The position numbers were made by a program, and so were the translations under genes. The notes beneath the pieces are model-generated. The model was given only the letters and a program-made list of their open reading frames with translations. It had not been told where the DNA came from and ran no database searches. A DNA stretch of 64,000 nucleotides from Histomonas meleagridis 2922-C6/04-290x (taxonomy: Eukaryota > Protista > Parabasalia), in contig JAANOX010000243.1 of the NCBI GenBank assembly GCA_020184695.1, forward strand, positions 711,772 through 775,771, written 5' to 3'. Of this stretch, positions 18,432 through 21,258 are shown one piece after another (the stretch's first letter is position 1; each line of letters opens with the position of its first letter).

Positions 18432-18905
18432 ATGTCAGTAGTCTACATTAGACCACATGTAGGAAAAAGAATTAACGCTCATGCTGATGGCTCATGGAAA
18501 TGGGACGGGAAATATCTTAGACTACATATTGGAAAAAGGATTAATGCTCATGCTGATTTTTCATGGAAATGGGACGGGAAATATCTTAGACCACATATTG
18601 GAAAAAGAATCAACGCCCATGCTGATGGTTCATGGAAATGGGACGGGAAATATCTTAGACCACATGTTGGAAAAAGAATCAACGCTCATGCTGATGGTTC
18701 ATGGAAATGGGACGGGAAATATCTTAGACCACATATTGGAAAAAGGATTAATGCTCATGCTGATTTTTCATGGAAATGGGACGGAAAATATCTCCGGCCA
18801 CATGATGAAAAAAGGATTAATGCTCATGCTGATGGTTCATTTAAAGTCACTGATGAAGTTCCGATACCTGTTCTAGTATTAATAGCAATACTTTCAAGTT
18901 TCTAA
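18432..18905 (+). CDS. Small tandem-repeat protein: ~6 copies of a 23-aa unit (YLRPHIGKRINAHADGSWKWDGK) plus a hydrophobic C-terminal cap
   Basis: Intact ATG-to-TAA ORF of 157 aa built from 69-bp units that vary mainly at synonymous positions; ends VPIPVLVLIAILSSF. Confidence 0.8.
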   Translation: MSVVYIRPHVGKRINAHADGSWKWDGKYLRLHIGKRINAHADFSWKWDGKYLRPHIGKRINAHADGSWKWDGKYLRPHVGKRINAHADGSWKWDGKYLRPHIGKRINAHADFSWKWDGKYLRPHDEKRINAHADGSFKVTDEVPIPVLVLIAILSSF

Positions 18906-19002: not shown

Positions 19003-21258
19003 TTATTTTTTTTCTTCTGTATTCTTTTCATCTTTAACGAAATTCTTTTTAATACTTTTTTCCATATCACCGAAACTTTGGTATATTTTAGTTTTATTTT
19101 CTTTATCCAAATTCCTTTTCGAAATCATTTGGTTCAACATGTTAAAGTTTTCCTTTAAGTTTAACAATATTCGATCAGTTTGATCATCTTGATCACCCCA
19201 TTTCCCGTTCAAATATCTTGTACAATATGCGCCTGAAAATCTTCTTTTCGCGGCCAAAGAATTTAATATACCGAACAAGATGCCTAAACTCATTCCTTTC
19301 GAAGTAAACATTTTATATCCTTTTTTAACATCATTTTCACTCACAGTTATACCACAAACCTTTAACACATCCACAGAAAAATATCCAAAATACTCAGGCA
19401 ATACAATAAAATCTGCAACGCCTGGAAACAAGTCGACGATTTCGGGAACTTTTTTCTCGATTCCCTCGACATAATTAAATGCAAATATTCCAGTCAATAT
19501 TTTCCCATCTAAAGGATCTTCGATAACTTCTCCACCAGCGTTTGTTAATGTCGAATGCGTTGTCATTAAAGCTTTAACAGGTCTCATTTGGCTTAAAGCC
19601 TTTTTGAGTTGGTCAGCAGTCAATGACGTCTTCACTTCGATAACAGATAAAACATTATCTGCTAAAATCGGAGCAATTATAGAACCAGTAGTATCAATAG
19701 TCAAACTTGGACATGAGTCATTCACTACGACTACGTCGAGTTGACCTGTTTTATTTGATAATGCGTCAATAACTTCTCCTGTTGTAACTTTAAATCCAGG
19801 AGATAAATGACTTTGTAAAAAGAGTCGACATAACGCTTCGCGATTAGCGCTATTGTTATTTCCGACATGTAATTCCCGATCACTCGCGTGTGCTAATGTT
19901 CCTAATATATCTGCTTGAGCACTAAAATGAGACATAAGTGGCGCAGTTTGATATTGTGAGAAATGATCTCGTAAATATCCATATAAACTATAATCCAAAT
20001 CTTCAATTTCTGGCGATGTATGTAACACGCGTTTACCTGCATTAATGCCAACTAAGTCTTTTTCAATTGATACAATGATTATGTCGGCATCTGATTGATT
20101 AATTTTGGCAATGATTTCGGCATCATCGTTTTTGGTCGATTTGGTTAACGTCGAACGCATTGTAGGCGACGCTTGACGTGGAAATGATGTTACTATTGAA
20201 CTAGCATTATGTGCTCCTAATCGTGTTGCTAATTTAGTAGCGGAGCCAATGTTTTCAACATGATCAACAGCTAATACTTTCTGACCAAAGAGATCAAGAC
20301 CTACAGATGAATCTTCTAATTCATATGAGCTACGAACAAAATATATTTTACGATGTTCTGGATCGGAAAGTTTTTCATAGTAATATTTGCGCTCTTTTGT
20401 GAGGATCTCATGGAATTTTGAGACAACAATGACGTTTTTTGAGAGAAGGAAATTTATGAGGCCAGGCCAAAGTGAATACTTTCGAATGTTATCAAAAGCT
20501 GCTGGAGATGTAATACAAAAAGAGTAATCGGCGGCAATGTTCGGCATTTCACATGATCGTGAATCATAGATAATCACATCAGAGATTTGTTCAGCAAGAA
20601 TTATGGCACGACGTATGTCAGTAGATGCATAAACAGTGGCACCGTTGTTGAGATAAAGTTTGATTTGCCAGGAATCTGAATCTGAAAAAATATCTGGAGG
20701 TATATCATCACCGGGCTCAAAGACATAATGAAGTCCACTCTCAACTGAAAACTCGCGTGGAACAGTAAGATAATCTAATTCAGTGATGGGAAAAATTACT
20801 GCAACTTTTCGCTGTATCTGTGTATTTAATATGTGGGTAAAATAACGACAAACTTGGGTCTTGCCAAGACCTGGCGCAAGAGTAGATACAGTAATAACGG
20901 GTTTGAACGATTTGATTTTTGTCCTTGGGAGAAATTCAACTTCACAATGACCACATGCAATTATACGATTAATGATAGATTGAGCTTCTCTCATTGAAAT
21001 ATCTTGAATATGTATTAGACATTTTTGTACTCGATACTTTTGAATCGCTTTTTCAAGATCTTTTAGTGGAAATACATGAAATGGATTTTTAAAAGGTCCT
21101 TTAAATGAAACAATTGGTGGTGGATCTTTATATTGTGAAACAAATCCACAGATTTCTTGATCTACATTTTGCGCATAAGTTCTCCAATAAGTATGAAATA
21201 CAGGATAATCACATCCAATAATTAAAATCCTGGTTCTTGCAAGTGTTCTTTTCAGCAT
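19003..21258 (-). CDS. Fusion protein: ArcE/cyclic-2,3-diphosphoglycerate-synthetase-like P-loop NTPase (aa ~1-430) plus DUF6602-like PD-(D/E)xK nuclease-fold domain (aa ~450-680)
   Basis: N-terminal: RTRILIIG, IKSFKPVITVSTLAPGLGKTQVCR (P-loop), ISDVIIYD, INQSDADIIIV. C-terminal: NREALCRLFLQSHL...GEVID...GQLDVVV...VLSVIEVKTSL. One uninterrupted ORF. Confidence 0.7.
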   Translation of the reverse strand: MLKRTLARTRILIIGCDYPVFHTYWRTYAQNVDQEICGFVSQYKDPPPIVSFKGPFKNPFHVFPLKDLEKAIQKYRVQKCLIHIQDISMREAQSIINRIIACGHCEVEFLPRTKIKSFKPVITVSTLAPGLGKTQVCRYFTHILNTQIQRKVAVIFPITELDYLTVPREFSVESGLHYVFEPGDDIPPDIFSDSDSWQIKLYLNNGATVYASTDIRRAIILAEQISDVIIYDSRSCEMPNIAADYSFCITSPAAFDNIRKYSLWPGLINFLLSKNVIVVSKFHEILTKERKYYYEKLSDPEHRKIYFVRSSYELEDSSVGLDLFGQKVLAVDHVENIGSATKLATRLGAHNASSIVTSFPRQASPTMRSTLTKSTKNDDAEIIAKINQSDADIIIVSIEKDLVGINAGKRVLHTSPEIEDLDYSLYGYLRDHFSQYQTAPLMSHFSAQADILGTLAHASDRELHVGNNNSANREALCRLFLQSHLSPGFKVTTGEVIDALSNKTGQLDVVVVNDSCPSLTIDTTGSIIAPILADNVLSVIEVKTSLTADQLKKALSQMRPVKALMTTHSTLTNAGGEVIEDPLDGKILTGIFAFNYVEGIEKKVPEIVDLFPGVADFIVLPEYFGYFSVDVLKVCGITVSENDVKKGYKMFTSKGMSLGILFGILNSLAAKRRFSGAYCTRYLNGKWGDQDDQTDRILLNLKENFNMLNQMISKRNLDKENKTKIYQSFGDMEKSIKKNFVKDEKNTEEKK

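Follow-up and report, generated by a model that had tools for sequence, protein, structure and literature searches.

A parabasalid protein family joining an ArcE/cDPG synthetase-type P-loop module to a NucC-type nuclease domain

A single open reading frame (ORF) in the genome of Histomonas meleagridis appears to join a P-loop module resembling arginine synthetase (ArcE) and cyclic 2,3-diphosphoglycerate (cDPG) synthetase to a restriction-endonuclease-like domain, which raises the questions of whether the fusion is real, what its two halves are and what such a protein may do. The gene occupies positions 19003–21258 (−) of the window, the 64,000-nucleotide stretch of contig JAANOX010000243.1 analysed here, in which all coordinates below are given. 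It is, as described in the initial annotation, one 751-residue ORF; it has an ATG start, zero internal stops and a stop codon at 19003–19005 (ORF listing; 100% self-match without stops). The motifs quoted there are all present in the translation: RTRILIIG (residues 8–15), KSFKPVITV...APGLGKT (116–134), DVIIYDSRSCE (227–237), INQSDADIII (386–395) and GEVID...QLDVVVV...IEVK (494–543).

Dozens of metagenomic contigs and the independent assemblies of Tritrichomonas foetus and Trichomonas vaginalis carry uninterrupted ORFs with the same two domains, as do two further Histomonas loci (61% and 47% identity to the 751-residue ORF). Because the ORF repeats at other loci, in other genera and in metagenomes, the fusion is not an artefact of assembly or gene modelling, and the joining of two separate genes by an assembly error, allowed for in the initial annotation, is contradicted by its recurrence in independent assemblies. 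The public gene model (P0001), of 663 residues, starts at Met89 and so lacks the first 88, which the paralogues conserve. A hydrogenosomal leader was considered and seems unsupported: the first strand of the structural model begins at residue 9 and the T. vaginalis protein starts MATQTPRTR. The 6–8 residues ahead of the conserved RxRxLIxG motif vary among the fusion proteins.

The N-terminal module, residues 5–434, can be assigned firmly as a full-length, divergent member of the ArcE/cDPG synthetase P-loop superfamily (‘predicted GTPase’, COG2403-type), as the initial annotation had proposed. Profile–profile alignment (hhalign) of the fusion family with the standalone prokaryotic family gave a probability of 100 and an E value of 8e-41 over 414 columns, co-linear from query residues 5–434 to template residues 6–447 of 455. 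A HMMER family profile matched standalone proteins with E values down to 3e-31 (profile positions 5–443), and the N-terminal 440 residues alone match standalone prokaryotic proteins of about 440 residues across 96% of the length of the latter (E 2.8e-15). When the N-terminal half was scanned directly, Pfam, NCBIfam and PDB sequences yielded no significant match, and it took intermediate standalone proteins, profiles and structure to reveal the link. Leads from the ESM Atlas stayed below threshold and again concerned the ‘GTPase / cDPG synthase’ clusters.

The module is composed of two sub-domains. A small Rossmann-like sub-domain (residues 6–110; 20929–21243 (−)), delineated from the AF2 model, its VIA alignment with cDPG synthetase 8oru and the published domain description of that enzyme (PMC10690619), corresponds to the cDPG synthetase dimerisation sub-domain. 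It is followed by an LpxK-like P-loop kinase-fold sub-domain of the ArcE/cDPG synthetase family (residues 115–434; 19957–20916 (−)), defined by hhalign and by structural similarity of model residues 88–434 to LpxK (4ehx, VIA Z 20.0). Foldseek matched the model to 8oru (E 3.9e-16), and VIA aligned residues 6–440 with residues 2–459 of the 8oru chain (Z 20.9).

Two characterised enzymes frame this module. TK2200, the ArcE of Thermococcus kodakarensis, and its widespread bacterial and archaeal homologues of about 440 residues (‘GTPase’, ‘cDPG synthase’) show co-linear, full-length homology with the fusion and have in common with it the Walker A GK[ST], the Walker B aspartate, an AE[KQ] motif and a PG motif. 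The connection to TK2200 itself is drawn through the gene context of the closest prokaryotic relatives and the description of the enzyme in the ArcE paper: an ornithine carbamoyltransferase (OTCase) gene lies within 4 kb at 17/80 ArcE-like genomic loci, and the genes of P0049 and P0085, among the closest relatives, lie directly upstream of an OTCase gene. ArcE, recognised only in 2024, reversibly catalyses arginine + ADP + Pi <-> citrulline + ATP + NH3 and is linked to OTCase and carbamate kinase; the ArcE paper mentions homologues in ‘a few eukaryotes’. The cDPG synthetase of Methanothermus fervidus (PDB 8ork, 8oru, 9sxb) is alike in its two-sub-domain fold and LpxK-like P-loop kinase core, whereas its sequence link to the fusion is weak (family profile E 0.009), its P-loop reads GTGKRIGKT as against LAPGLGKT in the fusion, and its 2,3-DPG-binding residues K145/R146 are absent from the fusion.

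Conservation was counted over 37 members of the fusion family, with 28 standalone proteins as reference; a reference column was scored as retained if at least 90% conserved in the 28 standalone proteins and kept in at least 80% of the 37 fusion proteins. Walker A (APGLGKT, A-x4-G-K-T; residues 128–134; 20857–20877 (−)) keeps K133 in 37/37 sequences, G132 in 35/37 and T/S134 in 36/37. The Walker B strand, of the form hhhhD232, continues into a family-specific loop, together DVIIYDSRSCEMP (residues 227–239; 20542–20580 (−)), with D232 in 34/37, C236 in 35/37 and E237 in 30/37. This segment stands where the standalone enzymes have D[VI]I[IL]WDGGNND; the WDGGNND signature is real in those relatives and aligns with YDSRSCE, as the initial annotation had read it, and cDPG synthetase has EGSGA in place of the fusion’s DSRSCE. 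K119 is invariant and E223 is present in 37/37. That K133, T/S134, E223, D232 and K119 are kept in 34–37/37 sequences of proteins only 32–67% identical is hard to account for without nucleotide binding, a property that the N-terminal module is likely, judging from these residues, to have kept. Walker A is of the relaxed [AG]x4GK[ST] type, as compared with the GxxGxGK[ST] quoted for cDPG synthetase, and competence for hydrolysis is uncertain because the classical motif's opening glycine positions are not retained (A128; position 130 variable).

Much of the remaining enzyme apparatus is altered. Only 8/38 near-invariant columns of the standalone proteins are kept and 30/38 are lost; the GAAGRD motif carries a 3-residue deletion and the EDGPTLTHG motif a 6-residue deletion, and the ArcE-group signatures GAAGRDFHNFN, RHPMPYG, EEREEYEP, WDGGNND, EDGPTLTHG and LPAMGY are all changed or deleted. 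In the tree of the N-terminal domain, a branch of about 3–4 substitutions per site separates the eukaryotic from the prokaryotic clades. Given these losses and this long branch, arginine synthetase activity is unlikely. The label ‘ligase’ in the initial annotation is doubtful, since most ArcE-defining residues have been lost. The Walker-B loop region is lined by new, family-specific invariant residues (C236, E237, Q224, W264 and N269), suggesting a site that has been remodelled, not one that has decayed.

The C-terminal domain (residues 435–676; 19231–19956 (−)) is firmly assigned as a complete NucC-type (DUF6602) restriction-endonuclease-fold domain, comprising the whole NucC fold with its embellishments, beyond the generic restriction-endonuclease core. 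It scores 75.4 bits with Pfam DUF6602 (PF20247), above the cut-off of 27 (E 3.8e-21, residues 468–564), and matches the PADLOC PD_DExK and NucC models (NucC effector, E 4e-13). Profile searches have placed both halves of the protein, the N-terminal one by hhalign and this one by Pfam. Model residues 435–675 align with residues 2–227 of NucC 6p7p_B (VIA Z 21.2, rmsd 3.8, 213/240 residues; Foldseek TM 0.73 on the target), and HMMER aligned the domain with the PDB NucC sequence at E 3.8e-6, placing D73, E104 and K106 of NucC at D508, E541 and K543. The nuclease active-site segment (residues 495–543; 19630–19776 (−)) contains E495, D498, D508, D534, E541 and K543, in the register LD508-x32-E541-V-K543, compared with ID-x30-EAK in NucC. 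The catalytic D508...E541-x-K543 is kept in 34–37/37 relatives, in agreement with the intact PD-(D/E)xK set, of a kind found in prokaryotic defence or toxin genes, that had been claimed for this domain.

A helix equivalent to NucC α0 (model helix 442–461; 19876–19935 (−)), at which the alignment begins from NucC residue 2, directly follows the P-loop module; F445 and Q448 are invariant in it and H444 nearly so. At the other end of the NucC-like fold is the near-invariant motif N..AA.RRFSG...RYL.G.WG (residues 666–688; 19195–19263 (−)), in which R672, Y682, G685 and W687 are invariant and R673, F674, S675 and G676 are at least 90% conserved. The structural alignment ends at model residue 675 and NucC residue 227, near RRFSG and in a part of the model with low pLDDT, so that the motif lies about where NucC T226/V227 touch cyclic triadenylate. 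The chain closes with a poorly conserved K/E-rich helical tail (residues 690–751; 19006–19191 (−)), modelled as helices 690–714 and 719–750 with low pLDDT at the end and lacking a consensus in the family alignment.

The fusion domain shares with NucC (PDB 6p7o, 6p7p, 6q1h and 7zgv), an effector of CBASS and of some type III CRISPR systems, the whole fold and also its embellishments, the α0 helix and a gate-loop-like hairpin, as well as the same Pfam and PADLOC models. The two differ in that their identity is only 15–18% and that the fusion domain is eukaryotic, attached to a 434-residue P-loop module and endowed with another conserved C-terminal motif and the helical tail. In the HMMER alignment NucC R53 corresponds to G488, Y81 to C516, H136 to N and Y141 to V, with family consensus G, C and variable. 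With these cA3-contact and latch residues gone, gating by cA3 has, by this alignment, probably not been kept in the fusion nuclease. A six-frame search of the 43-Mb genome for SMODS (PF18144), which covers a single cyclase family, gave no match; control genomes matched. The closest sequence relatives of the domain are standalone prokaryotic DUF6602 nucleases of about 250 residues (for example P0089, P0097 and P0121; E to 4e-26, profile positions 445–696 against protein residues 3–238), which match the same PADLOC models as the fusion but are single-domain proteins encoded in defence-like islands, where they pair in trans with varied partners, such as a caspase-like peptidase or a TIR-domain protein. 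Beside their genes lie either a TIR-domain gene together with Mrr and a restriction-modification gene of MmeI type, or a caspase-like peptidase with an integrase.

On sequence grounds, then, the fusion is made up of two complete prokaryote-type proteins as modules, the predicted nucleotide apparatus of one being kept and the putative Mg2+-binding D...ExK centre of the other intact. Among 1.84 billion proteins searched by profile, the two domains co-occurred only in the parabasalid fusion family, the architecture being present across parabasalids and not found in prokaryotes. A local two-profile scan of 192 fetched proteins found no two-domain protein outside that family either, its one distant outlier being the degenerate P0109, on a eukaryotic contig. 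A DUF6602 gene lay within 4 kb of 0/80 prokaryotic ArcE-like loci. As no prokaryotic fusion or operon of both modules was found in these searches, the ‘domesticated bacterial defence module’ suggested in the initial annotation can apply at most to the nuclease half. Histomonas has three full-length paralogues, Tritrichomonas no fewer than four paralogues and Trichomonas one, and in the trees of both domains the paralogues of one genus are intermingled with those of others. The fusion is an old, multi-copy family of Parabasalia, present in Histomonas, Tritrichomonas, Trichomonas and uncultured eukaryotes. In the separate phylogenies of the two domains, of the kind called for in the initial annotation, the eukaryotic clade is set off by a very long branch and has no prokaryotic sister that can be resolved; no donor is claimed for this reason.

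The neighbours of the Histomonas gene encode an ankyrin/DUF3447 protein, a repeat protein, a Dzip-like protein and an unassigned protein, and include no arc genes; in a eukaryote, an arc operon would be unexpected in any case. Because of these neighbours, carriage as mobile-element cargo was rejected.

The explanation that we favour, to which we give about an even chance, is that the protein is an active DNA endonuclease gated in cis by its P-loop module, with genome defence or DNA destruction as the likeliest role. Binding or hydrolysis of a nucleotide (ATP or GTP) in the P-loop module would gate the nuclease of the same chain, a small ligand at the remodelled Walker-B-loop site possibly being involved as well, and the module would do for this nuclease what cyclic triadenylate does for NucC. 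In NucC, α0 mediates trimer–trimer packing and the trimer is activated when two trimers pack (bioRxiv 10.1101/694703); cDPG synthetase is an obligate dimer that closes upon ligand binding (PMC10690619). Because a dimer-forming module is joined directly to α0 in the fusion, its dimerisation could assemble the hexamer: by analogy, nucleotide-dependent dimerisation or closure may pair two nuclease trimers into an active hexamer, the oligomeric states being extrapolated from NucC and cDPG synthetase and the folded model being of a single chain. The location of the RRFSG...RYL.G.WG motif, about where NucC holds its cyclic nucleotide, speaks against this model, in that the nuclease could be gated by a separate ligand rather than by the P-loop module.

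Gabija GajA and the OLD family combine a P-loop NTPase and a DNA endonuclease in one chain, with nucleotide-state-dependent activity. The fusion follows the same NTPase–nuclease logic with unrelated folds, ArcE/LpxK-like and PD-(D/E)xK of NucC type as opposed to an ABC-type ATPase and Toprim.

That parabasalids use the protein to restrict invading or selfish DNA, or to destroy DNA in a programmed way, is the likeliest role that we can suggest and also the weakest step of the proposal. Two observations run against it: the neighbours of the gene hold no pointer to defence, and stable, old paralogues are less typical of fast-evolving immune genes, housekeeping DNA processing fitting equally well. 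The more specific proposal of a self-contained, eukaryote-specific immune or suicide nuclease, in which the ArcE/cDPG synthetase-type module would sense a nucleotide or metabolite or make a phospho-signal and its dimerisation would drive hexamer formation, is put forward tentatively, as well short of probable.

Of the competing explanations, the one that survives best, although unlikely, holds that the ArcE-like module is an inert pseudo-enzyme serving dimerisation or partner binding, and that the nuclease is constitutive or controlled by a ligand at the RRFSG/RYL.G.WG site, a binding partner or localisation. The loss of 30/38 near-invariant residues, the deletions in two motifs, the merely relaxed A-x4-GK[ST] Walker A and the strongly conserved basic and aromatic motif near the NucC allosteric site would all fit an inert scaffold. 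Against it weigh the retention of the five nucleotide-site residues in so divergent a family and the new invariants of the Walker-B loop, which suggest remodelling. Moreover, degenerate members without GK[ST] also lack the nuclease residues, for example P0109, a distant outlier on a eukaryotic contig.

A housekeeping role, in which the same mechanism may operate in DNA repair, recombination, processing of replication intermediates or nucleotide salvage, appears decidedly unlikely. Pairings of NTPase and nuclease are common in repair, and the stably kept, interleaved paralogues and the ordinary neighbourhood, with no mobile-element or immune genes, agree with such a role; the nearest relatives of the nuclease, however, are defence-island genes and CBASS or type III CRISPR effectors, and the cleavage of DNA with little sequence specificity by NucC-type enzymes (bioRxiv 10.1101/694703) would be dangerous in a housekeeping enzyme.

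It is less probable again, indeed improbable, that the N-terminal module is an ATP-dependent enzyme with a new substrate, making a phospho-compound that the nuclease domain senses, like a CD-NTase and NucC fused in a single chain. The family members cDPG synthetase and ArcE catalyse ATP-driven phosphoryl transfer or cyclisation, each subfamily has its own conserved Walker-B loop bordering the second-substrate site (EGSGA in cDPG synthetase, DGGNND in ArcE-like enzymes and DSxxCE in the fusion), and the conserved Arg-Arg-Phe-Ser lies near the NucC ligand site. Yet at the positions of K145/R146 of cDPG synthetase and of the Arg in the ArcE-like RTGxGKS the fusion has Ala, Pro or variable residues, the other substrate-side motifs are for the most part altered or missing, no candidate substrate is known, and the C-terminal motif is mapped to the NucC pocket solely by the point at which a single structural alignment stops, where the model is of low confidence. 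Misassembly of two genes or a bacterial contaminant locus, for which no support was found beyond the differing start codon of P0001, has a negligible probability and is already refuted in practice by the intact ORF at three Histomonas loci, in independent assemblies of three genera and in many metagenomes, by the long, AT-rich, eukaryotic host contig, which bears ankyrin and other eukaryotic genes, and by the whole-chain AF2 model of the 751-residue fusion (pTM 0.73).

The two-domain fusion is absent from the searchable literature, the nuclease and P-loop families each being known separately, which bears out the remark in the initial annotation that the combination was not known as described. 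Literature searches for DUF6602, COG2403, the TVAG/TRFO loci and NucC with Trichomonas returned nothing relevant to it, and family members are named ‘DUF6602 domain-containing protein’ or ‘GTPase’ in databases, with no study attached. To our knowledge, NucC-type nucleases have been known only as prokaryotic immune effectors activated by cyclic oligonucleotides, and the ArcE/cDPG synthetase family only as standalone metabolic enzymes. Several old copies of their fusion persist in a whole lineage, one that includes the human pathogen Trichomonas vaginalis, the veterinary pathogen Tritrichomonas foetus and the poultry parasite Histomonas meleagridis, and since there is no animal-host homologue among the named matches, the protein is of possible interest as a parasite-specific enzyme. 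If the self-contained immune reading is true, a P-loop switch acting in cis would stand in for the cyclic oligonucleotides that signal in CBASS and type III CRISPR systems. If cis gating by the P-loop module is true, the family would represent a new mode of control for a NucC-type nuclease, a new job for the ArcE fold and, in protists with genomes full of mobile DNA, a candidate system of genome defence or DNA destruction.

The fusion protein is encoded on the minus strand at window positions 19003–21258 by a single uninterrupted ORF of 751 codons, and contains two complete modules: a P-loop module (residues 5–434) of the family that includes arginine synthetase (ArcE) and cyclic 2,3-diphosphoglycerate synthetase (cDPGS), and a nuclease module (residues 435–676). 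The motifs quoted in the initial annotation are all present in this ORF, with coordinates checked by translation. The contig is at least 776 kb long and belongs to an AT-rich genome of 43 Mb in 281 contigs. Two paralogues encoded elsewhere in this genome match named Histomonas meleagridis proteins at 100% identity, which identifies the organism as this parabasalid. The public gene model of the same locus (P0001) comprises 663 residues and starts at Met89. The omitted residues 1–88 (window 20995–21258, minus strand), which make up the first strands of the small N-terminal sub-domain and are conserved in paralogues, can be aligned across the family and include the nearly invariant G15, G38, F39 and P48; the 751-residue reading is therefore the better one, and P0001 is probably truncated at its N terminus. 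The first ten residues, MLKRTLARTR (window 21229–21258), superficially resemble a short trichomonad hydrogenosomal presequence; such a role is regarded as unsupported, given that the conserved domain already begins with residue 9 and that neither Trichomonas vaginalis nor other members conserve the leader. The opposite strand just downstream of the gene carries a 157-residue ORF (window 18432–18905, plus strand) made up of about six near-identical 23-residue repeats (...GKRINAHADGSWKWDGKYLRPH...), with a weak Pfam match to the PBCV basic adaptor domain.

The P-loop module returned nothing from Pfam, NCBIfam or a plain PDB search. A word search with residues 1–440 alone retrieved standalone prokaryotic proteins of 437–444 residues, covering up to 96% of the query (E-values of 2.8e-15, 3.4e-11 and 5.4e-8; one match annotated as cDPG synthase, one as a GTPase). 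The family profile, run against 1.84 billion representatives, reached standalone prokaryotic proteins with E-values down to 3e-31 over profile positions 5–443, and hhalign of the family with 21 standalone proteins gave a probability of 100 and an E-value of 8e-41 over 414 columns. The AF2 model of the whole 751-residue chain (mean pLDDT 80.5, pTM 0.73) had cDPG synthetase (PDB 8oru) as its top Foldseek match (E-value 3.9e-16). In VIA, 8oru aligned with a Z-score of 20.9 (model residues 6–440, chain residues 2–459), followed by the P-loop kinase LpxK (Z-score 20), a relationship described for cDPGS itself (PMC10690619). Word search, profile search, hhalign and structure comparison thus bear out the initial assignment of this half to the ArcE/cDPGS family. 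Gene context, together with the published description of ArcE (TK2200), assigns its nearest prokaryotic relatives to the ArcE type: two of them, P0049 and P0085, are each followed directly by a gene for ornithine carbamoyltransferase, such a gene occurs within 4 kb at 17 of 80 genomic ArcE-like loci, and ArcE was found through this very association (PMC11032458). Two prokaryote-type ArcE-like proteins, P0130 (655 residues) and P0136 (556 residues), are extended at the N terminus by about 258 and 90 residues, respectively, with no Pfam match, and group with ordinary standalone enzymes in the N-domain tree.

Conservation was counted over 37 family members with 32–67% identity to the query. Walker A is kept as A128-x4-G132-K133-T134, with K133 present in 37/37 members, as are K119 and E223-Q224; the Walker B strand ends in D232 (34/37). 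W264-P265-G266 and N269 are also kept, and H333, D401 and K409 largely so. A set of 28 diverse standalone proteins has 38 columns with conservation of 90% or more; at only 8 of these is the residue unchanged in 80% or more of the fusion family. The GAAGRD and EDGPTLTHG motifs are shortened by three and six residues, respectively, and RHPMPYG, EEREEYEP and LPAMGY are unrecognisable. The replacement of WDGGNND by YDSRSCE, pointed out earlier, holds in the alignment, where C236 (35/37) and E237 (30/37) are newly conserved. This loop follows Walker B and in cDPGS, where it reads EGSGA, borders the second-substrate site (PMC10690619); cDPGS, the ArcE-like enzymes and the fusion family thus each have their own conserved version. 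Neither K145 and R146, the P-loop basic residues that hold 2,3-DPG in cDPGS, nor the Arg of the ArcE-like RTGxGKS has a counterpart in the fusion protein.

In the C-terminal half, DUF6602 was matched at residues 468–564 (Pfam E-value 3.8e-21; score 75 bits, cut-off 27). PADLOC returned a Cas-associated PD-DExK model (E-value 4.5e-19) and two models of NucC, the cyclic-triadenylate-activated immune effector (4e-13 and 1e-7), and a plain PDB sequence search retrieved NucC of E. coli, Serratia, Pseudomonas and Vibrio (best E-value 3.8e-6). In that alignment, D73, E104 and K106 of NucC correspond to D508, E541 and K543; the ID-x30-EAK signature is the NucC catalytic centre, and D73N abolishes activity (bioRxiv 10.1101/694703). 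E495, D498, D534 and K543 are found in 37/37 members, E541 in 36/37 and D508 in 34/37. A nuclease domain with its catalytic set, as originally proposed, is confirmed by these matches. The entire NucC chain was matched by the AF2 model (Foldseek E-value 1e-11, TM-score 0.73 on the target; VIA Z-score 21.2, r.m.s.d. 3.8, 213/240 residues, model residues 435–675 against chain residues 2–227), and because the match runs end to end, the module comprises the whole NucC fold, beyond a bare restriction-endonuclease core. Both the α-0 helix and a hairpin at the place of the gate loop are present in the model. The residues that bind or enclose cyclic triadenylate in NucC (R53, Y81, H136 and Y141) are not kept, being replaced by G488, C516, an Asn and a Val. 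A search for the SMODS cyclase family found no match in the H. meleagridis genome and did find it in control genomes, a weak negative for the one cyclase family searched.

We infer that the fusion protein cleaves DNA as an endonuclease under the control of its own P-loop module. A NucC trimer gains activity only when it packs against a second trimer through the α-0 helices, which orders a segment beside the active site (bioRxiv 10.1101/694703). cDPGS forms an obligate dimer by way of its N-terminal sub-domain and closes on ATP and substrate (PMC10690619). In the AF2 model, the module that would form dimers extends to about residue 434 and is directly followed by the α-0 equivalent (residues 442–461), in which H444, F445 and Q448 are conserved. 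Joining a dimer to a trimer would naturally give a D3 hexamer, so that nucleotide-driven closure or pairing of the P-loop modules could decide whether two nuclease trimers meet. Alternatively, the P-loop module may be an inert scaffold and the actual regulator a conserved RRFSG site: the near-invariant motif AA.RRFSG...RYL.G.WG (residues 669–688), which closes the NucC-like fold, appears to sit near where T226 and V227 of NucC touch their ligand, a placement taken from the end of one structural alignment, where the model has low confidence. The P-loop module may also still be an enzyme, making a signal for the nuclease. Family conservation shows purifying selection on the nucleotide site as well as on the nuclease centre, and nucleotide binding was very probably retained. 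The site beside the nucleotide is read as remodelled, not decayed. In the alignments, both parent families' ligand-specific residues have given way to others, and arginine synthetase or cDPG synthetase chemistry was very probably not retained.

The fusion protein may serve repair, not defence, and its gene's own neighbours are ordinary. It is neither a toxin nor an injected effector. The standalone DUF6602 relatives examined (P0097, P0089 and P0121) are encoded in islands of defence-like character. The gene of P0097 immediately follows a TIR-domain gene and has Mrr and an MmeI-type restriction-modification gene as neighbours; P0089 adjoins a caspase-like peptidase and an integrase; and P0121 has a Panacea-domain gene and an IS110 transposase in its vicinity. 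A bacterial pair (L098:4956–6816 and L099:617–2477), in which the gene of a 335-residue TIR_2 protein is followed after 37 bases by that of a 271-residue DUF6602 nuclease, with Mrr and an MmeI-type restriction-modification gene alongside, looks like a two-gene defence unit of TIR signal plus NucC-like effector. At L008:6001–8644 and L009:564–3207, a 250-residue DUF6602 nuclease is followed by a 582-residue caspase-like Peptidase_C14 and a phage-type integrase, possibly a defence cassette on a mobile island. A DUF6602-type nuclease within 4 kb of an ArcE-like gene was found at 0 of 80 loci.

Misassembly of the two-domain ORF is in practice excluded; full-length copies occur at three loci of the H. 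meleagridis genome (identities to the query of 100, 61 and 47%). In the searches, the architecture was found in Histomonas, Tritrichomonas foetus (four), T. vaginalis (one) and dozens of metagenomic sequences, and not in prokaryotes. Every two-domain protein in the profile search of 1.84 billion representatives belongs to the fusion family (E-value <1e-116), and beyond a sharp break only single-domain proteins of about 440 or 250 residues follow. Separate N- and C-profile scans found both domains in 59 of 192 fetched proteins, all 59 of them fusion family members. In both domain trees the eukaryotic sequences lie on one side of a long, well-supported branch (support 98 for the C domain, 96/100 for the N domain), and the fusion most simply arose once; neither tree names a donor lineage. 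Histomonas and Tritrichomonas copies interleave in both trees, and the paralogues are therefore older than the split of these genera. The most divergent regular member, P0046, is on a eukaryotic contig, as is P0109 (L100:8001–9503), a distant two-domain relative of 500 residues accompanied by RMI1, an Arf/Ras GTPase and a bromodomain gene; with neither the GK[ST] of Walker A nor the D/E/K of the nuclease left, P0109 looks like a pseudo-enzyme offshoot. A fourth H. meleagridis paralogue, a 326-residue ORF (L004:1288–2268, plus strand; G000:C33 approximately 205931–206911), consists of the P-loop module without the nuclease domain and is very divergent (33% identity over residues 70–293); in the N-domain tree it forms a long branch nested among the fusion proteins, which suggests secondary nuclease loss. 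The T. vaginalis member, P0023 (TVAG_459780), is interrupted in the final third of its P-loop module by about 140 low-complexity residues rich in Ser, Pro and Glu (approximately 392–532), with all catalytic motifs otherwise kept.

Both modules come from known families, and the proteins are already public with no function assigned; the ArcE paper mentions homologues in ‘a few eukaryotes’ (PMC11032458), which may or may not include these proteins. The combination was new to the initial annotation, and in the searchable literature neither the architecture, its limitation to a eukaryotic lineage nor the remodelling of both regulatory sites was found. For the role of the fusion protein, the weakest link in the proposal, the sole basis is the company kept by the nuclease's prokaryotic relatives, which would point to defence against foreign or selfish DNA, or to programmed DNA destruction.
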